Shown: one piece after another, positions 35,386 through 51,367 of the stretch
How positions within the stretch are numbered: position 1 is the stretch's first letter
Layout: every line of letters starts with the position of its first letter
Sequence record: PV764602.1
Reading direction: 5' to 3' (one strand)
Length of the DNA stretch: 64,000 nucleotides
Notes under the pieces: generated by a model
What the model saw: the letters and a program-made list of their open reading frames with translations, nothing else
Databases searched by the model: none
What the model was told of the DNA's origin: nothing
Made by a program: the position numbers and the translations under genes

Positions 35386-36513
35386 ATGCTCAAGTATGAC
35401 AACGGGCTGGAATTGGACGTTACCATTGGTGGCGTCCAGCTTCCTGACAATGAGTTCTCGTTTCACCACCTGTCCCTAGTCAGTGACACTCGGTATTTCT
35501 TGCCGATGATGTTCATGCAGTTCGCTGACCAAGGCGACATTCTTCGGAAGGCTGGCGTTACCCTGTTTGACGCCGTACCCATTGTCATTAGCTTGGGCAC
35601 TGGCGATCAGAAAAGGAACTACGAGTTCCGCCTCCACCGTCCTGAGCAAGTCACCAGCGGCAACCTGACCATCTACAAAATGAGCGGGTATCTAGATGCC
35701 CCCAAGTACCTAGCTGAGTCTCAGAACATTGGCTACACGGGTACTAGCTCTGAAATCATCAGTCAAATCGGTGAACGTAGCGGCCTCACGCCACAGGTTG
35801 AGGATACCACCGACAACCAACGATGGTGGCAGGCCAACCGCCGCAATGCTGAGTTCGTTCGCTACATGGCCCAGCATGGATACAAGTCAGATGATTCCCT
35901 CATGTGTACGGGTGTGCGCTTCGACCGCTCCTTGCGATACATGGACCTGAACGCCATCGAGCCGCGAGATATGTGGCTGAGTTACACAAAGATGGACCAA
36001 AACGTCGTTACAATCGTTGACCACCGATTTAACGATCCTATGGGTGGGAATAATTTGATTAGGGGATACAGGAGTCGCACGGTAGATCAGAAGGTCAACA
36101 CTCCTGACACCAACTACAACGACACCACCATCAATCCCCGTGCTTCTACCGTGAGCATGAACCTGGACCTACAATCGCAGATTCAGCGAGGCAAGGTCGA
36201 GTTCTCACCGCTGTACGCTCCGGGTCAGGTGCACGATAACTGGGCCAAGGCCCGCCACCAAAACCTGCGCGGTCGCTATCTCAACAATTCGATCTGCGTT
36301 GCGCTGACCACTAACCAATCTAATCTGGACCTGTTTGATAGTGTCAAGATTGACAGCAGCTTGTCGATCCGAGACAACACCATCGGCGATGGTCAGAACA
36401 ACAGTCGGGAAGGTCAGTACATTGTGGCAGGCAAGGAGATCATGCTTGTCGGTCGCAACTACGGCGAGAAGATCAAACTGATGCGCGGCGGTATGAACGG
36501 AGAGAGTCAATGA
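35386..36513 (+). CDS. Baseplate hub protein (gp27/gpD-like)
   Basis: Size and position between gp53-like and spike genes; WWQANRRNAEFVRYMA. Confidence 0.65.
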   Translation: MLKYDNGLELDVTIGGVQLPDNEFSFHHLSLVSDTRYFLPMMFMQFADQGDILRKAGVTLFDAVPIVISLGTGDQKRNYEFRLHRPEQVTSGNLTIYKMSGYLDAPKYLAESQNIGYTGTSSEIISQIGERSGLTPQVEDTTDNQRWWQANRRNAEFVRYMAQHGYKSDDSLMCTGVRFDRSLRYMDLNAIEPRDMWLSYTKMDQNVVTIVDHRFNDPMGGNNLIRGYRSRTVDQKVNTPDTNYNDTTINPRASTVSMNLDLQSQIQRGKVEFSPLYAPGQVHDNWAKARHQNLRGRYLNNSICVALTTNQSNLDLFDSVKIDSSLSIRDNTIGDGQNNSREGQYIVAGKEIMLVGRNYGEKIKLMRGGMNGESQ

Positions 36514-37247
36514 GTATCGGTATGGGCGTCCGTGAATCGGACAGCTACAAGGGCATTATTTTCTATGGCAAGGTAGTGGACAACAATGACCCCGAACAGC
36601 TACGGCGTGTACGTGTCCATATCCCCGAGGTCTACGGTGATACCCCTCCCGAGGAATTGCCGTGGGCCTTCCCCAAATGTCCTCCTAGCGGCACTGGCCA
36701 AAGTAGCACCTTCGGTAGCTACGGTGTGTTGGACGTAGACAGCGAAGTATGGGTGGAGTTCCAGCAAGGCGATCCCCACTTCCCTATGGTGATTGGCGTA
36801 GCCTTGCGCGCCGACCTTCGGAAGCAGACTGAGCTAGTCAACTATCCTCACCGCTACGGCCTTGACGATTCCAAGGGTAACTGGATCATCGTTGACAAGC
36901 TGACAGGCGACGTGGAGATTGGCCACTTCTCTGACACCCGTGTACGCATCGAGCCTAATGGTAACCTGCACATCACTTCGGTAGCCAATCAAACGATCAC
37001 GGTTGAGCAAAATCAAGAGACCGAAATCAAGGGTAACGCTACTGTGCAGGTGAAGGGTAACGTCAACGTTACCGTTAACGGCAATGCGGAAATGAAGGTC
37101 GATGGGGCTATGAAGGCTAACATCGGTCAGAACCTCCAAGCTACTGTGGGCGGTAGTGCCACTGCCCAGGTTACTGGCCCCGCCACCATCAATTCAGCAG
37201 TCAAGATTTCGCTCAACGCACCAACGGTAAGTATCAACGGAGCATAA
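36510..37247 (+). CDS. Central baseplate spike (gp5/gpV OB-fold plus beta-helix)
   Basis: GKVVDNNDPEQLRRVRVHIP, LPWAFP and VWVEFQQGDPHFP; 8-residue VxGN repeats. Confidence 0.88.
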   Translation: MSIGMGVRESDSYKGIIFYGKVVDNNDPEQLRRVRVHIPEVYGDTPPEELPWAFPKCPPSGTGQSSTFGSYGVLDVDSEVWVEFQQGDPHFPMVIGVALRADLRKQTELVNYPHRYGLDDSKGNWIIVDKLTGDVEIGHFSDTRVRIEPNGNLHITSVANQTITVEQNQETEIKGNATVQVKGNVNVTVNGNAEMKVDGAMKANIGQNLQATVGGSATAQVTGPATINSAVKISLNAPTVSINGA

Positions 37248-37248
37248 G

Positions 37249-38181
37249 ATGGGAACGATCACCATTTCAGTGACAGAGCCTTTGCCTACGTTCGACAGTC
37301 TGTATCAGGCAATGCTCCCGAATCTGACGTTCCCTCCGACCGGATTCCAGTGGCCACCCGCCCTCCCCGGTATCCCCACTATGTTTCCCTCTATCAGCTG
37401 CCCTAACATGAGTGGTGTCATGGCGATGGGCCAGTTGATGACCGAGCAGTTGCTCACGTCTGCGTTCATGATGATTAAGCCTATCTCAGAATTCCTAGGC
37501 TTGGCAATGTCTGCCATCCCCAAGATTCCCATCCTGAACATTGGCGTAGATCAGTTGCTCACTATGTCGGGTGATGATTTGATCGCGGCAGCAAAGGGCG
37601 CAATGCCTTCGCTACCTAACCTCTACTTCTCCCTCGACATACCGGACATCAACGTCGTGCAGTGGCTGACGCAGCTGAAGTCTAGCTACCTTATGTCACT
37701 AGCCGGGTACTTGCAAAACATCATTAAGCAGGTGACAGACAAGATCAAGATTCCGGGCATGCCCACGTTGCCTACCATCCCCACGATGGAAGACGTGAAG
37801 CAAATGCTGATAGATCAGATTCCCCCTCCGATCAATGACCTTCGCAACGTTGACCTCAACGCGCTATTGGCCAACATCAGCATCCCAGGCATCCCCTTCG
37901 TTTTCTCCCTGCCGTCGCCTTTCATCCCTAACATTTCGATGCCTGAGATTGACTTCAACGAAATGATTTCGGGACTGTACAATAGCATCGTCATGATGCC
38001 GATGAAGACAATGCAGGACTTCATCATGGACAAACTAAGTAGTGTGATTTCCCTCCAGCTGCCTACGCTGGTTTTGGTCATTCCCACTATTGAGATTCCC
38101 ATTCCGGAAATCCCAATCCCTGTTATCCCGCCGCTGCCTAGCATCCCGGACCTGCCTCCGCTCACCATCCCTGTACCTTGA
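37249..38181 (+). CDS. Pro/Ile/Met-rich hydrophobic protein following the spike
   Basis: About 45 Pro in 310 aa, in (I/L/M)-P-x triads. Confidence 0.7.
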   Translation: MGTITISVTEPLPTFDSLYQAMLPNLTFPPTGFQWPPALPGIPTMFPSISCPNMSGVMAMGQLMTEQLLTSAFMMIKPISEFLGLAMSAIPKIPILNIGVDQLLTMSGDDLIAAAKGAMPSLPNLYFSLDIPDINVVQWLTQLKSSYLMSLAGYLQNIIKQVTDKIKIPGMPTLPTIPTMEDVKQMLIDQIPPPINDLRNVDLNALLANISIPGIPFVFSLPSPFIPNISMPEIDFNEMISGLYNSIVMMPMKTMQDFIMDKLSSVISLQLPTLVLVIPTIEIPIPEIPIPVIPPLPSIPDLPPLTIPVP

Positions 38182-38198
38182 TTCATTGGAGAATCTAT

Positions 38199-38831
38199 AT
38201 GACTATTTCTACCCCTTGGCTATCCGGAGGTAGCGGCCTAACTACTTCTGGCCCCAATGACTTGAAGCCTGCACAGTTCATAGATCAAGTAAAGGCGTTG
38301 CCCTTTGGGCCAGCGCGTTACGAAGCGTGGCCGGGCCCAAACGGTCTTCAGCTTGACCCTAATAAGTTGCAGGGACAGATGGCCACTATTGAGGTTGGCT
38401 CTGCTCTATACAACCTGCTGGCTCCGTTTCTTTTTCATCAGGTCCAGTCCCCAAATAACTATTCGTACAAATTCGATCTATACGATTCCGTTGAGGAGTG
38501 TGTAGAAATACGGGCGTACAAGTTTGAACCTGGTACCACGTTTGATAACGGTGACCATTTCTCCTTCCTCCATACTAGCATGACAGCTGACTCGCATCGT
38601 AAGCTAGTGGCGTTTTGGAATTTGAACTGGACCCTCTCGGATCCAGCCACCATGTCTATACCTCCCCTATATCTCGCCTGTGATTACCCTTGGACCACTT
38701 ATTGGTACGCTGGAGATGATGCACTTCGGATGGTGCCGGGGCCTGTGTGCTGGACTATAGGGCGCATGATGCCCTATATGCCTACTATGTACTGGTTAGA
38801 GGTATTCTTTAAGGGCCCAACTTTCGTGTAA
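38199..38831 (+). CDS. Degenerate 2OG-Fe(II) oxygenase paralogue A
   Basis: Aligns by eye to 39786..40391 (YKFDLY, HRKL, KGPTF); HxD is HFS and the distal His and Arg are lost. Confidence 0.65.
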   Translation: MTISTPWLSGGSGLTTSGPNDLKPAQFIDQVKALPFGPARYEAWPGPNGLQLDPNKLQGQMATIEVGSALYNLLAPFLFHQVQSPNNYSYKFDLYDSVEECVEIRAYKFEPGTTFDNGDHFSFLHTSMTADSHRKLVAFWNLNWTLSDPATMSIPPLYLACDYPWTTYWYAGDDALRMVPGPVCWTIGRMMPYMPTMYWLEVFFKGPTFV

Positions 38832-38847: not shown

Positions 38848-39789
38848 ATGCCTGTATCTAATCCACCTACCTTGTTGAGTGTCATTGCAGAGTTCGGAGG
38901 CCCTAACAATCTTGGGGCCTATTACCGCAAAGGTCCATACGTACCTGACGGTCCTCCGCAGAATGCCAACATCAGTGATACGCCGGGCGGTCTTCGTCTC
39001 AGTCAGTTTGCGGGTGCGGTCAAGTACAATCTCAGTGCGTCCCTGAATCGCACGACCGCCAACACCAGTGGTAGTGGCAACAGCCAGTCGGGACGTGTCC
39101 TAACTCCACAGCTGATTGTTTACCCCGTTAACGGCAGCGGCAACTACAGCTACTACTGGAACTACACCGCAGGCGTCCCTGTTAGCGGAAATACCAGTAG
39201 TACGTTCCAGCTGTACGCTGATCTCAACAATGGTCAGAACATTTCTGGCAACGGTAACTGCGTGGTTACCGATAACGTCACTGGTCAGAATGCGATCCCT
39301 AGCTTTACGTTCTACCTAAGCTGGACGTATGAACGCCCACCCACCTGTGTTGTCATGGAAGCATACCTGCACGATGGAAAGCAGGCAGGCATGTACAACT
39401 CCAACGATCCTCTGCTGTTGGTCGATCCATACGCAAGGACTTCGGAGACGCTGAACATCGTAGATGCGCAGACCTTCACCCGAGAGTGTGTGACCTTGGT
39501 TACTGCCAATGGCTCACGCCTAACGTGCTCCACCACTGCACCTATTCCAGTCAAAGCCGACTCGGAAACGCTGGTTCGTGCGGTGGATGCTCTAGGCCAC
39601 CACGTTGCTACTACCACACGCCCTAACGACGTGATCCCATCGGTCACTTGGGATAAGGTAGTGCGTGTGCTGCCTGCTGGTGAGCGTGCTGTCCGCAATA
39701 TCTACATCTACGACAAGTGCTTCTGGGCTTCGGATGACAATCGTTCGTTCATCCTCCATCACAACACGACTGGTAAGCAGATCATATGA
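38848..39789 (+). CDS. Adhesin-like tail protein with C-terminal Hint domain
   Basis: N-terminal attachment-type domain ending LRLSQFAGA; Hint from C (39346) to HHN (39765) followed by TTGKQII. Confidence 0.65.
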   Translation: MPVSNPPTLLSVIAEFGGPNNLGAYYRKGPYVPDGPPQNANISDTPGGLRLSQFAGAVKYNLSASLNRTTANTSGSGNSQSGRVLTPQLIVYPVNGSGNYSYYWNYTAGVPVSGNTSSTFQLYADLNNGQNISGNGNCVVTDNVTGQNAIPSFTFYLSWTYERPPTCVVMEAYLHDGKQAGMYNSNDPLLLVDPYARTSETLNIVDAQTFTRECVTLVTANGSRLTCSTTAPIPVKADSETLVRAVDALGHHVATTTRPNDVIPSVTWDKVVRVLPAGERAVRNIYIYDKCFWASDDNRSFILHHNTTGKQII

Positions 39790-40391
39790 TCGTCAACAAA
39801 GAACCACGCACCGCTACTCCGATGAATTGGTTGCCTACGTACTACCTCAGTCGGATGTTTAACGCAGAAGAGTGCGCCACCATCATCAAGGAGTCAGAGG
39901 ACTCCGGACTGTTTGTGCAAGGCCGCACCATTGGCGACAATAACGTGACTGTAACAGAGCAAGGCCGTCAGGTGGCCATTATCCGACTGGCTGGAGGTAC
40001 GCTGTACGAAATGATGCGCCAACGGATACTGGAACGGCTGCCTGACCTAAACTCCTGCTATCAGTTTGAACTGTTCGGCGCAGATGAAGTCTTCAAGGAA
40101 ATCCATATCCTGAAGTACGTGGAAGGTAATTTCCACGGTGAACATTTGGACCTCGCCGGTTACGAGGAAATGTGCAACCGGAAGCTCAGCCTCATCGTCC
40201 AGTTGAATCCGGATTACGAGGGCGGTGAATTAGTCCTCTACAACTCTTATCCCGAGAAACCTCTGACCAATAGCAAGCAGGCTGGCGACGCAGTGGTGTT
40301 CCCTGCATGGATGCCGCACGAAGTAAGACCTGTTGACTACGGGACTAGATACGTTCTTGTGGTTTGGTTGCGAGGCCCTAAATTTAGATAG
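39786..40391 (+). CDS. 2OG-Fe(II) oxygenase (prolyl-hydroxylase/PKHD-like)
   Basis: HLD...RKLS...YEGGEL...FPAWMPHEV...TRY...WLRGPKFR: complete HxD..H triad and 2OG-binding Arg. Confidence 0.9.
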   Translation: MIVNKEPRTATPMNWLPTYYLSRMFNAEECATIIKESEDSGLFVQGRTIGDNNVTVTEQGRQVAIIRLAGGTLYEMMRQRILERLPDLNSCYQFELFGADEVFKEIHILKYVEGNFHGEHLDLAGYEEMCNRKLSLIVQLNPDYEGGELVLYNSYPEKPLTNSKQAGDAVVFPAWMPHEVRPVDYGTRYVLVVWLRGPKFR

Positions 40392-40401
40392 GGAGGTACT
40401 C

Positions 40402-40989
40402 ATGGCCGTATCAAACCCACCAACATTGGTGAGCGTGCGTAACGAATTCGGTGGCAACGGAAATCTCCGTGCCTACACACGAGGCGGTGGCCTTGTTCCA
40501 GATGGGCCTGCGCAGAATGCGAACATCAGCAAAACTCCGGATGGTTTGCGGCTTAGTCAATTTGCAGGAGCAACTAAAATCACTGCACAGTTGACCGACA
40601 TTTATGCGCAGCAGTCCTACTACGGACAATCGGGTCAAGACAACACTGCTTCTGCCACCATCCAGTTTAGTACCGATGGCAACATCTACTACACATGGGG
40701 TATGGGAGCTTTGCAGACGTACCGATGGTTGGCTGGCGGTAATGCAAGTGATTTTGACGTAGAAGGATTTAATCAGCAGATCGCAGGTAACGGTCAAACC
40801 TCGGGCACGATGAATCGTCAGAATTTGGGTGGTTCTCCCCGATGGTCATGTTCCGCTGCAACCCGATTTGGTTTTGTTGATTCTTCCATGTCATTTGGCT
40901 GCCGAATCTACCAAGCGGGTACTGGTAACGTTATCGCTACAGCGAATTTCAGTATTTATGCCGCCGCCTCAGATGGTAGCATCGGATAG
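40402..40989 (+). CDS. Adhesin-like tail protein, paralogue without Hint
   Basis: First ~59 aa closely match 38848..39789; the remainder is unrelated. Confidence 0.65.
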   Translation: MAVSNPPTLVSVRNEFGGNGNLRAYTRGGGLVPDGPAQNANISKTPDGLRLSQFAGATKITAQLTDIYAQQSYYGQSGQDNTASATIQFSTDGNIYYTWGMGALQTYRWLAGGNASDFDVEGFNQQIAGNGQTSGTMNRQNLGGSPRWSCSAATRFGFVDSSMSFGCRIYQAGTGNVIATANFSIYAAASDGSIG

Positions 40990-41044
40990 CAACTCCATCT
41001 TCTAGTAACAACCAAAACGTTTGACACAACAAGGGAGAAGAAAC

Positions 41045-41722
41045 ATGTTCCAAGAAAGGGACCAAACTACAGCCAAATGGAATCCCCTCTGCCACGAACA
41101 GGTCAACTTGATTAACTCTTCGCTGATCGCGCGCCTCAAGGCGAAGGCAGATGAGTATCCGGTTAACCCTTACGGTTGTGGGTGGGATAACGGCGTTCCA
41201 CTGGACCTTACTGCACCAACGGCCAGTGACGCGTCGCCAGAAGCTGCGTTGATTCACGACACCCGAACACTCATCGCAGAATGCGTCCACCGCCTAGCAG
41301 GCTTCTATCCATTCGATTTGTATTTCAAGGATGCGGCCTTTGTTGTTCCTGCCCCACAACCTTCTTCGGTACGCTTAGTGCGACTCGCTATGGGTGCGAA
41401 GCTTAATCCGCCCCACGCTGGTACGGCGGTTGCTCCCGGCGCCACGAATCGCATTGATCTGAATACGCATAGTCAGGCTCATCAGAAGATTCATATGATG
41501 ATCCCGCTCTCTGCTTACGAAGGTAACGACGTGTTCTTCCCCTTCTTCGATCCGAACTTGCAGGAATGGAAAGACGTGTCGCCCACCATCACTAACGCAC
41601 GGGCTGACTGGACAGGCATCACGTTGTCATGGCCTGCGTGGCGGTTGTGTAGGTTCAGTCCCGTCGAGGACGGCGAAGCCTACCTCCTGCTAGTCACGTT
41701 GTACGGACCTCGCTTCCAGTAA
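41045..41722 (+). CDS. Degenerate 2OG-Fe(II) oxygenase paralogue B
   Basis: YPFDLY, HQKI..AYEG and WPAWRLCRFSPVEDGEAY..YGPRFQ; both His ligands and the Arg are lost. Confidence 0.65.
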   Translation: MFQERDQTTAKWNPLCHEQVNLINSSLIARLKAKADEYPVNPYGCGWDNGVPLDLTAPTASDASPEAALIHDTRTLIAECVHRLAGFYPFDLYFKDAAFVVPAPQPSSVRLVRLAMGAKLNPPHAGTAVAPGATNRIDLNTHSQAHQKIHMMIPLSAYEGNDVFFPFFDPNLQEWKDVSPTITNARADWTGITLSWPAWRLCRFSPVEDGEAYLLLVTLYGPRFQ

Positions 41723-41748: not shown

Positions 41749-42153
41749 ATGGCAACCACCAACAACATCCTGTTTAGTGACTTCAACACGCTAGTCGGGT
41801 TGAATAACAAGCAAGCCATCGTCATCAATGATGATGCAGTTGCCAATGTGGTGCTCAACATTGTTCTGATCCAGAAGCGCAGCCGTAAGTTTCGGATTGG
41901 GTATGGAGCATCAAGTCACTTCTTCCTGCAAAAGCAGGTGACTGCTGAGAACGCGGAGAAGTACAGGATGACCCTCTACCAAGACCTGACCAAATGGGCC
42001 GGGTCTGTAGCCAAGTTTGATATGGCGGGCATCCAAGTGAAGCCTCTCCAGAATTACGACGGTTACGGAGTGGTCATCCTGTACAAGTCCAACCTTTCGG
42101 GTTACTACAATCAGGTTTCAGTCCAGCTGCCGTCCACCTCGGTGGCACGCTAA
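41749..42153 (+). CDS. Baseplate wedge protein (gp25-like)
   Basis: DAVANVVLNIVL...RKFRIGYGA; size; upstream of the J-like gene. Confidence 0.75.
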   Translation: MATTNNILFSDFNTLVGLNNKQAIVINDDAVANVVLNIVLIQKRSRKFRIGYGASSHFFLQKQVTAENAEKYRMTLYQDLTKWAGSVAKFDMAGIQVKPLQNYDGYGVVILYKSNLSGYYNQVSVQLPSTSVAR

Positions 42154-42338
42154 TACCGAAAATAGGGCCAAAATAGGCCCACAGCACCCTCTACCCACAG
42201 GGCGCCAAATTTAGAGGCTCCAGCTTCCATCTACGACCCCAATCCTTGCGTCAAAACGCATAGTTGGGGCGTAGATTTTGGCTACATTTTCCACTCCCCA
42301 ACCCTCATTTTCCTATGGCCACTGACCGGAATTCAACC

Positions 42339-44096
42339 ATGACAACTGTAACCGCGTTGTCCAATATCCGCCCTGACTTCGATGACATTGCAGCACAGCT
42401 GGGATCGAGTCTGACGCGCAAGGCGAACTGGGCTCCGCTGCTTCCTACTCAGACTGCAAGCCTCTTGATTGAAGGCGTGGCCGCCGCCACTGCGTTCCTG
42501 CAAACCGGTGTGCAGAACAGCTTTGAAGAAACGTTCCCTCAGACCGCCCGTATGCCTTCGAGCCTGCGGGCGTCTGCGCGTCGGCTCGGTGTCCGTCTGA
42601 CGCGCAAGTCCCCTGCACAGACTCGGGTACGGCTCACGCGAGCCACCGCAGCCACGTCCGTCCTGATCCCTGAGTTCTCGGCCTTCCAAGCGCCGGGTGT
42701 GTCTCTGTTCAACCGCTCTGCCATACTGTTCCCCGTCGGTACCCTCTCCGCTGAATTCGACTTGTACGAAGGCTTTATCACTCAGGTTTCGTACACGGGT
42801 CAAGGTGCTGACAGTCAGATGATCGTTGTATCTGTCCCCGGCTTCACCATCAGCAACATGGACGTGCGGGTCACTGTCAGTGGCCGTCCGCTGCAAGTGG
42901 TGACTGATGGCATCTGGCACTACCCCATCACGAACAGTGGCGATCCTAACTACGTGGTATCGGACAACACGCTGCCTACGGGCGAGCTTCTGCTTGAGTT
43001 CGGTAACACTCAGTTCGGCATGATCCCTCAGCGTGGTGCGCAGATTCTTGTGTCCTATGCTGTGACCAATGGTACCTCCGGCAACAACGTACAGTTTGAG
43101 AATCAGCGCATCACGTACTCGGCCAACGGTGTTGAGTTCACTGGCAGCGCGCTTACTCCACTCACCGGAGGTACTGACGAACTTGACGCAGAGCAGTACC
43201 GCGATAGTCCGTTGATCTACGCGTCCTACGAGCGCGCGGTTGCTATTCCAGACATGCCTGCTATTGCTACGAAGTATCCCGGCGTTGTCGATGCCATCTT
43301 CCTTGGTCAGAAGGACATTGCTCCGAATCTCAAGGAATTCATGAACGTTGTCTACACCTACGTTCTGATGGATACGGGTTCTCAGATTTCTGCTACGCAG
43401 TACACGGACTTCCTCAAGTGGTGGCAGCCTCGCTCGATGCCCCTTGAGTACGTCCGCCAAACCGCCAAGCAAATTGCAGTAGACGTTGCAGGCACCATCT
43501 ACATCACGGGTCAGGGCGATCCGGATTCCATCTTGGCCAAGGCGCGCGCAGCAGTTGCCAAACTGTTCACTGCACGCCAAGGTTACTTGGGTCGCGATCT
43601 GTACGTGGACGACCTTATTGACTCCATCCGTACTTCGGACCCTTACGTTGACCACGTTACCCTGACTTCACCCACCGCTGACGTTATCTGTAAGATCAAC
43701 GCACCGCAGGCCCCTACTGTTACTCCGGCTACTGGCGGTACGCTCCCCAACGGTACGTACATCTATTCGGTGTCTGCTGTCTCCAATCTCAGCCCTGTGC
43801 AAGAAACGTTCGCTTCGGTGAATGGTGCGGTGACGCTGACGGGAACGAACAACGCCGCACGTATCAAGTGGAATGCAGTGGCAGGTGCTGTGCAATACAA
43901 GGTGTACGGGCGCACTGCTTCCCAAGAAATGTTCCTGCTTGCCACGGTCAGCGCATCTTCTGCGCTTGAATTCTTGGACACGGGTTCTGTTACTACTGGC
44001 GCTGCTGTCAACAAGATCAACACTGCGGGTATCTCTTACGTTACCCTCAACAATACGAACTTGCAGGTGGCGTTCACTGATCGAGTAGGTGTCTGA
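42339..44096 (+). CDS. Baseplate J/gp6-like wedge protein with FN3-like insertion
   Basis: TARMPSSLRASARRLG, GGTDELDAEQYR and ERAVAIPD; alternative start at 42315. Confidence 0.85.
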   Translation: MTTVTALSNIRPDFDDIAAQLGSSLTRKANWAPLLPTQTASLLIEGVAAATAFLQTGVQNSFEETFPQTARMPSSLRASARRLGVRLTRKSPAQTRVRLTRATAATSVLIPEFSAFQAPGVSLFNRSAILFPVGTLSAEFDLYEGFITQVSYTGQGADSQMIVVSVPGFTISNMDVRVTVSGRPLQVVTDGIWHYPITNSGDPNYVVSDNTLPTGELLLEFGNTQFGMIPQRGAQILVSYAVTNGTSGNNVQFENQRITYSANGVEFTGSALTPLTGGTDELDAEQYRDSPLIYASYERAVAIPDMPAIATKYPGVVDAIFLGQKDIAPNLKEFMNVVYTYVLMDTGSQISATQYTDFLKWWQPRSMPLEYVRQTAKQIAVDVAGTIYITGQGDPDSILAKARAAVAKLFTARQGYLGRDLYVDDLIDSIRTSDPYVDHVTLTSPTADVICKINAPQAPTVTPATGGTLPNGTYIYSVSAVSNLSPVQETFASVNGAVTLTGTNNAARIKWNAVAGAVQYKVYGRTASQEMFLLATVSASSALEFLDTGSVTTGAAVNKINTAGISYVTLNNTNLQVAFTDRVGV

Positions 44097-47227: not shown

Positions 47228-49513
47228 ATGATTACCCATCAGGATACACTGTTCTCCAACATCCTATACGGAAATAATTGGAGTGCAGCTACCTACCAAG
47301 CCGCAAATCGGTTCACCATCCAAGGTGACAAGCGAACTTCGTATGAGGTAGGTACCCAGGTTCAGATTCTCACGTCTGCTGTAGCTACTATGCAGTACAG
47401 CTACGTTAGTGCAGTTACGTTCGCCTCCAACGTTACTACGGTGACGGTGAGCGACGGTCTATTCGCTTCGGGTCAGAAGATCAACGTTCGTGCATCGCCG
47501 TTTGGTGCCAACAACATGCCCCTCGGCCGACGCTTCAAAGAAATCAGCGTGTTCGGTGCGAACGGCCTGACGATCTCGAATGCGAGTCCGAAGTTCACCC
47601 TGTTCGTTGAAGGCGTTGGTGCGGGCAAGGTCAACACGTTCACTTTCCAGCCGGGCTCGGATGGTATCTCGTTCAAGGTTGGCCGTGATGCAATCGGTCT
47701 CGATGCCATGCGCATTGACGCCACTTCGACTGCCATCACCAAGGTGACGTTGTTCTCGCCCCTGACCTTTGGCGCGACGTATACGGGCGCCCTGACTTCG
47801 CTGACCGACCTTCTGACGATTGGTCAATACGCACTGACCTATTCGGCTACGGGTTCTTCGACCGGCAGCAATCGTCTGTATATCTCCGGCCCTAATGGCG
47901 GCGAGTTCACCGTTGGTCCTACCAACGATGCTCAGGTATTCCGTCGTATTCGACTGCGTGCTACTGACGTTGTGGTCGAGAACAATCCCGGCGGTTCCTC
48001 GCAAGCAGGCTCGATCTGGCATAGCCTCAACTTCGATCCTGACACCCGTGTTACCAAGGGTCAGAATGGTTCTTGGATGGATTCGGCTTACACTGCGATC
48101 AACAACCTTAACAACGCTCAGGGGTATTTCAACCAGTGGGCATCGGGCGCCGCACAGGCTCCTGTTGCAGGTTCGACGGGTGTTGTGCAAACCATGCACA
48201 GTGCGGGTGGCAACAACTTTAACCCTGTGGCTGGTGCTTCGCTGGTGCAGACGGCTTATGTCACCAATGGCACCGCACCTGCCCTGTATGTGCGACGCAA
48301 CGTAGGTGCTTCGGGTTGGTCTGCATGGACTAAGCTGTATACCCAAGCAGATTTCTCGCTTGGCGATTACGTCAAGATCGCAGGCGGTGATACCATCCAG
48401 TCCCCGATCACTGTACGTACTGCCTTGTCCGTTGGCACGACTGCGGATGCAACGTCCACCCTGAACTTCGGTACCTCGGCCAGTCCCAACGGTCCTGCTG
48501 CTACCATTTCTGTTACGGGCGGCGCAGCGACCACGGGTCGTGGTGCAATGACTATCAACGCGCAGTCCATCGCGCTGCCTGCACTGAACGTCAACGGTAC
48601 GATGAACGTTTCGGGCGCTGCTTCGATGGCGGGCCCACTGACCATCACTACTGGCTCCATACTGCTGGGTAACGGCACGTATGGGGAATCGCGTATTAGC
48701 AATACCTTCGACGACTGGTATTTGTATTCCAGTCCTACGGGACTTGGCTGGTACAGTATCAGTAAGGGTAGTGCTTTCTCACTGGACAAGAACAGCAAGG
48801 CGTTCACGTTCAATGGTGCGGGTACCATCAACGGTCAGACTACCATCAATGGTGGTCTGAACGTGGCGAGTGGTAGCGGTATCATCACTTCGGGCAACGT
48901 TGTTGGTGCCAACGGCAACTTCTCCAATGACGTGTTTGCTCCGGGCGCTTTCCGTGGTGCTCGCCTGCACATTTACGCAGGCTGCATTGCCTACGGTCAG
49001 GGCTTCCTGCCTAGCTGGAACGACTACGGTGATGGCGCAACGGTCCTGACTAACGCACGCGGCGGTGGTACGGGCGGTTTCAAGTTCCGTCAGATGAATA
49101 GTGACGGTGGTGGTCAGGTTTTCCTTGCCTTCATCAACCCGAACGGTACCATCGGTTCGGCGTCGGACGAACGCATGAAGGAATTCGGTAAGGTACTCGA
49201 CCTGTCTGACGCTCTTCGGTTCATCCGTGAGCAGCGAGTCAAGCATATCAAGTGGAAGCACACCGGCGAGGAGGATATTGCGTTTGGTGCGCAGAGCATC
49301 TTCAAGACCACTAGGTTCCTGGCCCACTATGACAAGGGTGCTGACTTCTGGCAGCTGTACTACCCGAAGGTCGCTCTGTATCATCACGAAGCTCTCTTCC
49401 ATATCCTTGAAGTGCAGAACAATCACGAAGCCGACATTCAGATCCTGATTCGCAAGAACGAAAATCTGGAAGAGGAAGTGAAGCAGCTGCGCGAACGGTT
49501 GGATTCTCTCTAA
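47228..49513 (+). CDS. Long tail fibre with C-terminal Peptidase S74 intramolecular chaperone
   Basis: G/S/T/N-rich shaft, WSAWTKL, SASDERMK cleavage motif and terminal coiled coil. Confidence 0.85.
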   Translation: MITHQDTLFSNILYGNNWSAATYQAANRFTIQGDKRTSYEVGTQVQILTSAVATMQYSYVSAVTFASNVTTVTVSDGLFASGQKINVRASPFGANNMPLGRRFKEISVFGANGLTISNASPKFTLFVEGVGAGKVNTFTFQPGSDGISFKVGRDAIGLDAMRIDATSTAITKVTLFSPLTFGATYTGALTSLTDLLTIGQYALTYSATGSSTGSNRLYISGPNGGEFTVGPTNDAQVFRRIRLRATDVVVENNPGGSSQAGSIWHSLNFDPDTRVTKGQNGSWMDSAYTAINNLNNAQGYFNQWASGAAQAPVAGSTGVVQTMHSAGGNNFNPVAGASLVQTAYVTNGTAPALYVRRNVGASGWSAWTKLYTQADFSLGDYVKIAGGDTIQSPITVRTALSVGTTADATSTLNFGTSASPNGPAATISVTGGAATTGRGAMTINAQSIALPALNVNGTMNVSGAASMAGPLTITTGSILLGNGTYGESRISNTFDDWYLYSSPTGLGWYSISKGSAFSLDKNSKAFTFNGAGTINGQTTINGGLNVASGSGIITSGNVVGANGNFSNDVFAPGAFRGARLHIYAGCIAYGQGFLPSWNDYGDGATVLTNARGGGTGGFKFRQMNSDGGGQVFLAFINPNGTIGSASDERMKEFGKVLDLSDALRFIREQRVKHIKWKHTGEEDIAFGAQSIFKTTRFLAHYDKGADFWQLYYPKVALYHHEALFHILEVQNNHEADIQILIRKNENLEEEVKQLRERLDSL

Positions 49514-49556: not shown

Positions 49557-50948
49557 ATGTGGATCACCCCTCAGAATCAAACTCTTGATGACACGTTCGA
49601 TCCATACTTTCCGGGTACAACTCGGTGGTATGGTTACACCGGCATCCTCATCAACAATACGCAAGACACCTACGATCGGTACGCTCCTTTGCAGTATGGC
49701 AGGCAAGCTCCATCCACGGCGATCCTTGCGCAGAATCAGGTAGACCTGAATCAGATTTACGCAGCCCGAGGTACAGCCGGCTACCTGCAAGGTATCTCTA
49801 TCCCAAATTGCTACGTGGGCTGCTCTGGCGTTACCATCAACGATCTTCTCGCTGCTCGATGCACCATCATCATCAAGAACGACGGTACGTGGCAGCAGTG
49901 GTTCTATTCCACCAACTACAAGACGGATAGCCCGGGTGCATATGCACCTCCTAATCGTGGCATCCCTCGAACCGAAACCAACTTCAGCAACGGACGCATG
50001 AACGCCGCCGGTAACTGGGCACAGATTCCGTTCGCTGGTGTGGGTAACAACTACGAGACTTTCTGCCACGCTCCTTGGGCTCCATACGAAAGCAAGAACC
50101 CACCTGATCTAGATTGGGGTACTGCCGATCACTATAATCGGTATGATGCTGCACTCATCAACTATATCTGGCACAACTTTAAGGGCCAAGGACAGTTCGG
50201 TAGTGCTAGTGATCCATACGTGGTGCAGAACACTACACAGAACCCTAATGAAGACATTCCAGATGGTCGGGTATATCGCATCGACCGCGATATTCGGTTC
50301 ACCCTTGGCTTGACTGCACAGGGACGCAACAACGTTCGTTGGAACTACGATGACAACGGTGCTCTGTCATGGTACAACCGAGCCAACTTTTCGGTGTACA
50401 TTCAGACACCCGGCGGCGGTCAGCGTGTAGGTGCCACCTGCCTTATGACCAATGAGATTCGTTGGAATGCGTGGAATTGGACGGGTGGTAGTGTCGGCGG
50501 CGGTGGTGGCGGTGGTGGCGGTGGTTGCGTTGCTGCTACCAGCTATGTTGACTTCCAAAAGACCGCAGGCACTGTTGAGGCAGGCGACTACCTCATGGGT
50601 ATGACGGATGATCTGCAATTTATGGAGCTACACGTCCTGAGTGTGCGTCGTCAAGTGCAACCGTGTGTCCGACTCTACTCAAAGAGTGGCGTCACCCTTG
50701 TGTGCTCAAAGTCCACGCCGCTGACCCTACAGAACGGAGATTGCGTGCTGGCAGGCGAAGCACGAGCAGGTATCAAGCTTCCGGTACGATTCTTCGCGGC
50801 TGATCCTGAGTGGGAAACCATCGTCAAGATCGAGGAGGTTGGCAACCGGGAAGTGATGCTCATCAACTGCGGTGGACAGAGCTATGCTGCCGGTGAGTTG
50901 CCGGGCCGCTATATCTACACCCACAACAACAACCAGCAGAAGATGTGA
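49557..50948 (+). CDS. Fibre-tip adhesin-like protein with Gly10 linker and C-terminal Hint domain
   Basis: Aromatic/Asn-rich body; G10-C start of Hint at 50526; THN at 50919-50927 followed by NNQQKM. Confidence 0.7.
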   Translation: MWITPQNQTLDDTFDPYFPGTTRWYGYTGILINNTQDTYDRYAPLQYGRQAPSTAILAQNQVDLNQIYAARGTAGYLQGISIPNCYVGCSGVTINDLLAARCTIIIKNDGTWQQWFYSTNYKTDSPGAYAPPNRGIPRTETNFSNGRMNAAGNWAQIPFAGVGNNYETFCHAPWAPYESKNPPDLDWGTADHYNRYDAALINYIWHNFKGQGQFGSASDPYVVQNTTQNPNEDIPDGRVYRIDRDIRFTLGLTAQGRNNVRWNYDDNGALSWYNRANFSVYIQTPGGGQRVGATCLMTNEIRWNAWNWTGGSVGGGGGGGGGGCVAATSYVDFQKTAGTVEAGDYLMGMTDDLQFMELHVLSVRRQVQPCVRLYSKSGVTLVCSKSTPLTLQNGDCVLAGEARAGIKLPVRFFAADPEWETIVKIEEVGNREVMLINCGGQSYAAGELPGRYIYTHNNNQQKM

Positions 50949-51367
50949 TGATTGGTTCTGACCAACTCTCAGAAGTAGGTGTACCTGTCGGAGAGCTCTC
51001 CATTGGGAGGACTCTCGACGTATATGCGGTGGACGATCTACACTCGGTCATCCGCCTGAAAGGAACCGTCTCAAATCGGGTCCTGCGCAGTGCAGAAGTA
51101 GTAACCATCACAACTGCCTCCGGCGCTTCCGTTGTGGTGGCTGCCCAAAGTCGCCTCCCTGTCTATAGCGGACAGACAGCGCTGGCTAAGAATGTTGGTG
51201 CCAACATGATTGCTGTGATGGCCCCTAATGGCGCTTTTCGGTGGGAGCGGGTTGCCACCATCGAGGCTGGTACTGAGGCCGTAGTGGACCTCAAGTGTGA
51301 AGGCTACATAGTAGCCGGTAACGATCCTAAAACCGGGCTAATCTTGGTGTCTGGATCGCTGCCGTGA
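50948..51367 (+). CDS. Stand-alone catalytically dead Hint-like protein
   Basis: TGATG-coupled; aligns by eye to the upstream Hint (VVTITTASGASVVV, WERVATIE); C1 and HN are absent. Confidence 0.55.
   Translation: MIGSDQLSEVGVPVGELSIGRTLDVYAVDDLHSVIRLKGTVSNRVLRSAEVVTITTASGASVVVAAQSRLPVYSGQTALAKNVGANMIAVMAPNGAFRWERVATIEAGTEAVVDLKCEGYIVAGNDPKTGLILVSGSLP

Follow-up and report, generated by a model that had tools for sequence, protein, structure and literature searches.

The stretch of DNA analyzed here (the window, 64,000 nucleotides of record PV764602.1) belongs to a jumbo Xanthomonas myophage and is 100% identical to PhiXhv-15. Inside its baseplate gene cluster lie two genes whose products we refer to as P1 and P2, with the gene of a 2OG-Fe(II) oxygenase between them (Table 1). 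PhiXhv-15, PhiXhv-16, and Ep026, with genomes of ca. 228 kb, encode proteins 100% identical to P1. The papers on PhiXhv (PMC13340338) and LucasX (PMC9009655) include no virion mass spectrometry.

Table 1. Genes and protein features of the window considered in this work
Feature	Coordinates	Strand	Remarks
Hub-like gene	35386-36513		First of the listed baseplate cluster
gp5-type spike gene	36510-37247		Baseplate cluster
Gene of a 310-aa protein	37249-38181		Baseplate cluster, after the spike
217-aa protein	38178-38831	+	Weak similarity to the 2OG oxygenase (BLASTP E 1e-4)
P1, 313 aa (N-module, body, Hint, 7-aa tail)	38848-39789	+	Proposed tail/baseplate accessory protein; hypothetical protein in PhiXhv-15
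P1 N-terminal module, residues 1-58	38848-39021	+	Common to P2; AlphaFold2 pLDDT 75-90
P1 variable body, residues 61-164	39028-39339	+	GSGNYSYYW motif; pLDDT <35, no confident fold
P1 Hint-fold domain, Cys167-Asn306	39346-39765	+	CSTTAPIP 227-234, CFWA 291-294, HHN 304-306; from predicted structure and family motifs
P1 tail TTGKQII after the terminal Asn	39766-39786	+	Seven residues, Lys at +4; from sequence
2OG-Fe(II) oxygenase, PKHD/prolyl-hydroxylase type	39786-40391	+	PF13640, phrog_61, NF003974
P2, 195 aa (N-module 40402-40575, beta-rich body, no Hint)	40402-40989	+	P1 paralogue
233-aa 2OG-oxygenase-like protein	41021-41722	+	Catalytically dead by ligand loss; similar to the live copy (BLASTP E 4e-6)
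gp25-like gene	41749-42153		Baseplate cluster
gp6-like gene	42264-44096		Baseplate cluster; fibre genes thereafter
Second Hint-family protein	49557-50948	+	Gly10 linker, Cys1, THN; E 1.2e-17 to the family profile
Stand-alone degenerate Hint copy	50945-51367	+	E 6.5e-6 to the family profile

Both open reading frames are present as described in the initial annotation. The ATG of P1 is preceded at 8 nt by a Shine-Dalgarno sequence (AGGAGG), and for P2 the ATG at 40402, with GGGAGG upstream and in agreement with the annotation of PhiXhv-15, was preferred to a TTG at 40333. By BLASTP the two proteins are 47% identical over 146 aa (E 4e-26), with the similarity concentrated in residues 1 to 59, and their first 60 to 63 aa are 70 to 73% identical, confirming that they are paralogues through a common N-terminal module (here N-module). 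The orthologues P0002 and P0003 are 54% and 36% identical to P1, respectively. An AlphaFold2 model of P1, built on an alignment of six sequences, gave pLDDT values of 75 to 90 for residues 1 to 60 and of 70 to 90 for residues 167 to 313, that is, for the two ends of the protein. We propose that P1 is a tail or baseplate accessory protein made of three parts, an adaptor module, a variable body of ca. 105 aa, and a C-terminal Hint domain of 140 aa.

The bodies could be characterized much less. The GSGxYSYxW motif of P1 gave the impression of a PKD-like domain and nothing beyond that, given that hhalign aligned a single column with the neighboring PKD protein of locus L049, at a probability of ca. 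1%. The body of P2 was modeled as a low-confidence beta sandwich with generic Ig-like matches only (Z ≤ 6.2), and since this is the range of common arrangements, the matches to a pilus-tip lectin, Ig, and Calx domains were not taken as an indication of an adhesin.

Genome-wide counts of N-modules and Hint domains were made on the identical PhiXhv-15 record (228.7 kb), in which the N-module appears exactly twice. In other genomes it is found in several architectures. Proteins of ca. 320 aa combine N-module, body, and Hint (P0002, P0003, P0016, P0022, P0024, P0032, P0042, P0046, P0088, and P0099), P0112 has the N-module joined straight to the Hint, and the Hint-less versions have 150 to 195 aa (P2, P0009 to P0011, and the proteins of LucasX, RTH11, L063, L064, L066, and L067). 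Scans of IMG/VR and metagenomes contributed five extra loci. Two gene neighborhoods were recurrent. At L063, L064, L066, and L067 the N-module gene is located directly 3' of a Peptidase_S74-capped fibre gene, with one small gene in between at L051 and in LucasX, while in the window, L003, L058, and L065 it comes after the spike gene and that of a 307- to 310-aa protein. Tandem paralogues also recur, two Hint-less ones in the same baseplate slot at L058 and two Hint-bearing ones at L050. Because N-module genes elsewhere are found just after self-cleaving fibre genes, it is plausible that the module serves for docking or as an adaptor, and that P1 and P2 are, as had been suggested initially, interchangeable tips competing for one docking site.

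The T2-type gp38 is an adhesin that attaches to the far end of the long tail fibre and provides the surface for receptor binding, and the first reading of this sequence had perceived an echo of its attachment domain at the end of the N-module. That echo disappeared on searching, since tblastn with the N-module retrieved no T-even gp38 from 50,697 phage records at E ≤ 10, nor was there any among the phage matches of full-length P1. What appears to be shared, judging from the sequences, is position only (the N-module gene follows a fibre gene at L063, L064, L066, and L067, as gp38 follows gp37), together with the layout of a small N-terminal part and a variable body. In the window, however, the genes of P1 and P2 are part of a baseplate cassette and do not follow a fibre gene.

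Only P1 carries a Hint domain, as initially annotated, with Cys167 encoded at 39346, CSTTAP at residues 227 to 232, and HHN at 304 to 306 followed by Thr. In the AlphaFold2 model, residues 167 to 306 clearly adopt the Hint fold. The top Foldseek matches in the PDB were all inteins, BIL domains, or Hedgehog proteins (E 1.6e-5, probability 1.0, TMt 0.6 to 0.7). With VIA-align, 78 chains reached Z ≥ 8, among them the NpuDnaB intein (Z 14.0, rmsd 2.4 Å over 131 residues) and the Hedgehog autoprocessing domain (Z 13.5, rmsd 2.6 Å over 131 residues, model residues 167 to 305); Cys167 of the model superposes on residue 1 of the intein and residues 305/306 on its last residues. Sequence models were silent by comparison. 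No curated model (Pfam Hint, Hint_2, PT-HINT, and Intein_splicing, with Pfam tested at E ≤ 10, or NCBIfam) matched P1, 110 relatives had no Pfam match at E ≤ 0.01, and a sequence search of the PDB with a six-sequence profile returned noise only. The best PDB sequence match of the 110-sequence family profile was the PhoCDC21-1 intein (E 0.024), with CStTAPIP aligned to the VTPTHPFF of its block B. According to this alignment Ser228 replaces the block B Thr and Ala231 the His, with S228-T-T-A231 opposite T-P-T-H, in accordance with the missing histidine noticed at the outset. Thus, P1 has the fold, the block A Cys, and the penultimate His and terminal Asn of block G (H305-N306) expected of a Hint domain, while the block B signature T-x-x-H is absent. 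In most inteins the block B His aids the N-S acyl shift, so that the activity of the P1 Hint should not be taken for granted.

A search of 1.84 billion proteins with a profile of six domains retrieved at least 924 cluster representatives (50% identity) at E ≤ 1e-3 (546 at E ≤ 1e-10), and by these profile matches the Hint of P1 belongs to a large, unnamed, and uncurated family. Its carriers are phage tail proteins as well as secreted and pilin-like proteins of bacteria. The domain is usually located at the end of the protein, and the cargos that precede it, from 11 to 1728 aa long, are mutually unrelated; some are PKD fibres or collagen-like repeats, others are pilin-like N-termini, and one is a metalloprotease-like secreted protein. 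The near-invariant positions are Cys1-Val, L-x-C-S-x-T-A-P-I-P, F-W-A, and L-H-H-N. Cys1 is kept in 150 of 154 domains, and block B reads S-x-x-A where inteins have T-x-x-H, with an invariant Cys directly ahead (in the CSxTAPIP motif, Ala occupies the position of the intein His in 153/154 and Pro is found in 150/154). The residues of F-W-A are found in 153, 127, and 144 and those of the terminal H-H-N in 151, 150, and 149 of the 154 domains. The family has lost the block B histidine and gained the invariant Cys and a Lys-bearing tail.

Both junctions of the domain are informative. At -1, 127/150 domains have Gly, Ala, Ser, or Thr, and at least four Gly occur within the eight residues ahead of Cys1 in 74/150, i.e., about half have a poly-Gly linker. 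With such small residues and Gly-rich runs, this junction resembles a scissile linker; that of P1, with Thr at -1, lacks a poly-Gly stretch. On the other side, the residue at +1 is mostly Leu, Lys, Ile, Ala, Met, or Val, and a nucleophile (Cys, Ser, or Thr) occupies this position in only 5 of 153 domains, two of them with Thr. What is conserved after the terminal Asn is a Lys, found at +2 in 125/153 domains and within +1 to +5 in 150/153, which is retained even in proteins that continue with a second Hint or a long extension.

From these features we infer, as the best reading, a self-cleavage of Hedgehog or BIL type at Thr166|Cys167. The domain would most likely work once and in cis. Cys167 would attack the Thr166-Cys167 peptide bond, giving a thioester, and the N-terminal part of 166 aa would then be released, leaving a mature P1 similar to the Hint-less P2 in size and layout. 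Alternatively, the Hint-like domain might have no catalytic activity and remain attached to serve structure or binding, or it might assist folding as a cap until a different protease cuts it off. The missing block B His speaks for this, and so does the clearly degenerate stand-alone copy in the same phage, which indicates that non-catalytic use of the Hint fold does occur. However, we consider it distinctly unlikely for P1, where every family-invariant residue is present, and in view of the near invariance of Cys1 and HHN across ca. 150 representatives (at 50% identity) in spite of their unrelated cargos.

The Thr after the terminal Asn had led to the suggestion of either splicing of the 7-aa tail or simple release, and of the two options simple release is the better. 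In a canonical intein-type splicing, Thr307 would attack the thioester and the seven-residue tail would be joined to residue 166. P1 and its closest relative P0002 (from L003) do have Thr at +1, as well as Thr at -1 and Lys at +4, and A-type BIL domains can occasionally splice (PMC7765530). Nevertheless, splicing is highly improbable here, since so few members of the family have a nucleophile at +1, with Lys conserved instead, orthologous proteins with N-module and Hint have Ala, Gln, or Gly at this position, and the ligation would recreate nothing conserved. Nor does P1 correspond to an intein in the strict sense, with a +1 nucleophile and two exteins of a conserved host protein, its "C-extein" being the 7-aa tail.

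Among known systems, the A-type BIL domains (Amitai et al. 2003; Dassa et al. 2004; reviewed in PMC7765530) are Hint-fold domains with an N-terminal Cys, a C-terminal His-Asn, and no obligatory nucleophile at +1, located in the variable parts of secreted or surface proteins that are themselves not conserved, and expected to self-cleave at one or both ends. By signature only, the family of the P1 Hint would qualify as such, and the structure of a Clostridium thermocellum BIL domain matches the P1 model with Z 11.7. The differences are that no sequence model ties the P1 family to BIL (Pfam and NCBIfam are blank for P1), that this family has the His-less C-S-x-T-A-P-I-P block B and a His-His-Asn-x-Lys end, and that its usual place is the very C-terminal end of phage tail proteins, with one clade coupled to a 2OG oxygenase. 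The Hog/Hint domain of Hedgehog resembles the P1 Hint in structure (see above) and in being a C-terminal Hint that frees an N-terminal cargo through a Cys thioester, which for P1 is the putative mechanism. P1, unlike Hedgehog, has no sterol-recognition region, there being only seven residues past Asn306, and it also differs in the block B without His, the presence of a terminal Asn, and the phage setting.

A different fate of the Cys167 thioester would be its resolution by the epsilon-amino group of a lysine rather than by water. In one variant the Lys of the tail attacks, and cyclization of Asn306 discards the Hint, so that the tail peptide ends up branched on the new C-terminus; in another, the attack comes from a Lys of a different virion protein and P1 is anchored covalently in the baseplate. 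The retention of a Lys within five residues of the Asn, even ahead of a second Hint or a long extension, is what would be expected, and there is a precedent in BIL2 of the Tetrahymena BUBL protein, in which protein splicing gives an isopeptide bond between a Lys epsilon-NH2 and a C-terminus (PMC8616854). BIL2 has the Hint fold (Z 12.0 to the P1 model) and its chemistry could serve as a model for the conserved Lys tail, but the similarity is structural only, the cargo of BIL2 is ubiquitin-like, and it is activated by zinc via a block B His (H69) that P1 does not have. Besides, the Lys could equally serve the catalysis of Asn cyclization, or packing, and in P1 it is displaced to +4. Altogether, Lys-directed ligation appears to us possible but unlikely; we treat it as the chief competitor of simple release, which is the preferred outcome.

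The oxygenase encoded between P1 and P2 matches PF13640 with 57.7 bits (E 2.4e-15; cut-off, 27), and its HxD motif, distal His, and 2OG-binding Arg are intact, with the ligands conserved in six orthologues. The stop of P1 and the start of the oxygenase gene overlap by 4 nt (ATGA), and the same overlap of Hint and oxygenase genes is found at L003, L004, and the bacterial locus L007, with a JmjC oxygenase as partner in the last case. Two more genes of the cluster seem to derive from oxygenases. In the alignment, the 233-aa protein has HAG instead of HxD, Cys in place of the distal His, and Ala in place of the Arg. The 217-aa protein is probably also a dead relative, and its gene is accessory, as it is missing from PhiXhv-12 and L003. 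Given that the extra copies are dead or probably dead and that relatives do without the 217-aa gene, the minimal cassette is composed of the Hint protein and the oxygenase.

Gene order couples the oxygenase to the form with both N-module and Hint, a link that the initial annotation did not mention. An intact oxygenase gene adjoins such genes in five of six loci (the window, L003, L008 (partial), L049, and L050), being located at L050 between two of them, and was not found at the sixth, L051. Conversely, none of the eight Hint-less N-module loci has an adjacent 2OG oxygenase; at L058, the corresponding baseplate slot of a relative, a pair of Hint-less N-module genes is found without any oxygenase. 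The contrast is significant by a one-sided Fisher test (p = 0.003), although the loci are phylogenetically related, and both counts and p value thus overstate their independence. Among the Hint loci without N-module, the oxygenase is adjacent in 2 of ca. 45, L004 (with a collagen-like cargo) and the aforementioned L007 (bacterial, JmjC type). It was absent from the other ca. 43, L060 and L061 included, and a lenient HMM search also gave none in L014, L060, and L061. These counts speak against a general partnership of oxygenase and Hint family, which we discarded, and the Hint-less loci argue equally against its being a partner of the N-module itself. The Hint tree gives a similar picture. Five of the six loci with N-module and Hint (six rows) group together with moderate support (96/74), L051 being elsewhere, and in the enclosing clade of eight rows (support 100/98) seven come from loci that hold an oxygenase, adjacent in six and at ca. 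1.8 kb on the other strand in L005.

The oxygenase, translationally coupled to P1, would then be a dedicated partner of the form with N-module and Hint, and this protein is probably what it hydroxylates, P2 and the two dead oxygenase copies being later additions to the two-gene cassette. Taken as a whole, we hold the proposal of a three-part P1 with Hint self-cleavage and a dedicated oxygenase partner to be probable, if only by a little. Cholesterol captures Hedgehog through its hydroxyl, and a parallel capture of the P1 thioester can be imagined. The Hint and the adjacent hydroxylase would in this case form a two-component system of covalent attachment, with either a lysine or a hydroxyl capturing the thioester, the hydroxyl having been introduced by the oxygenase into the N-module protein or into a partner from the baseplate or fibre. 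In this way a tail-tip protein would be covalently anchored in an oxygen-dependent manner, and P2 would bind the same site non-covalently. We regard this extension as quite improbable, a long shot compared with self-cleavage and release.

To our knowledge, the main example so far of a phage fibre cap that removes itself is Peptidase_S74, the intramolecular chaperone of tail fibres and endosialidases. This is likewise a C-terminal cap that is shed after assembly, and it is found in the same tail modules, but fold and chemistry are unrelated, a Ser-Lys dyad versus a Cys thioester and Asn. The Hint type would represent a second, chemically different putative cap, widespread (the 924 or more clusters mentioned above) and uncatalogued. 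Literature searches gave no description of a Hint on phage tail fibres or of a pairing of Hint with a 2OG oxygenase. New here are the N-module family, the rejection of its link to gp38, and the co-occurrence of Hint and oxygenase, by which the genes of one Hint clade are linked to that of a protein hydroxylase. If cleavage or ligation were confirmed, this would offer a testable route by which accessory tips mature or become fixed on the baseplate, suggest what the many unexplained 2OG oxygenases of phage structural modules might do, and possibly yield a new self-processing tag for protein engineering.

As to variation among close phages, P1 and P2 are each 99% identical between PhiXhv-12 and PhiXhv-15, and hypervariability at this scale was discarded.

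The C-terminal Hint cap, the predicted self-cleaving domain of the 313-aa tail/baseplate protein P1 and its relatives, is also used by type IV pilin-like proteins, because among the 110 Hint-family representatives (alignment A5) a prepilin N_methyl motif was found in four and a PilS N-terminal domain in three. Some related proteins (P0015, P0023, P0036, P0040, P0051, and P0137) carry two Hint copies in tandem, the first ending in HHN-KK-x-G-[F/Y/S], with Cys1 of the second directly after it. This second copy forms the C terminus of the protein and ends in HHD, HHS, or VHE, with neither the Asn nor the tail.

A single protein encoded on a bacterial contig (L007) has a double-glycine leader (ELDRISGG) and an HExxH motif, along with a Gly8 linker and a Hint domain of the same family. 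Its gene overlaps by 4 nt that of a JmjC_2/Cupin_8 oxygenase, after which comes a gene for a membrane fusion protein of the AprE/HlyD type. The set looks like a Hint-capped protein destined for export together with a hydroxylase dedicated to it.

Large phage contigs share a recurring block formed by a Hint-capped fibre, DUF1353, and then opposite-strand genes ending in DUF7208 (locations are listed in the table). A 2OG oxygenase adjoins DUF7208 in L005, whereas none was detectable in the L061 block. Genes with the N-module, the N-terminal piece common to P1 and its Hint-less paralogue, are adjoined in three unrelated loci by a small phrog_25696 protein (136 to 141 aa).

Locations of the features described in the window and in related loci
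Feature	Location	Remark
217-aa dead-oxygenase-like gene	window 38178-38831	
761-aa fibre	window 47228-49513	
Hint-capped protein	L007:38-3689	bacterial contig
Hint fibre-DUF1353-DUF7208 block	L005:8001-12966	
Hint fibre-DUF1353-DUF7208 block	L061:5001-13141	
phrog_25696 protein	L049:7336-7743	
phrog_25696 protein	L050:4055-4477	
phrog_25696 protein	L059:5557-5973	

Upstream of P1, the 217-aa gene is an indel between near-identical phages, present in PhiXhv-15 but missing from PhiXhv-12, where the 310-aa gene directly abuts P1; L003 lacks it too. The C-terminal sequence of the 761-aa fibre (…SDERMKE…) looks like a Ser-Lys self-cleaving S74 chaperone, yet searches with this protein gave no Pfam Peptidase_S74 hit at E ≤ 0.001 and no match to a PHROG family. 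The next gene encodes the second Hint-capped protein of the window.
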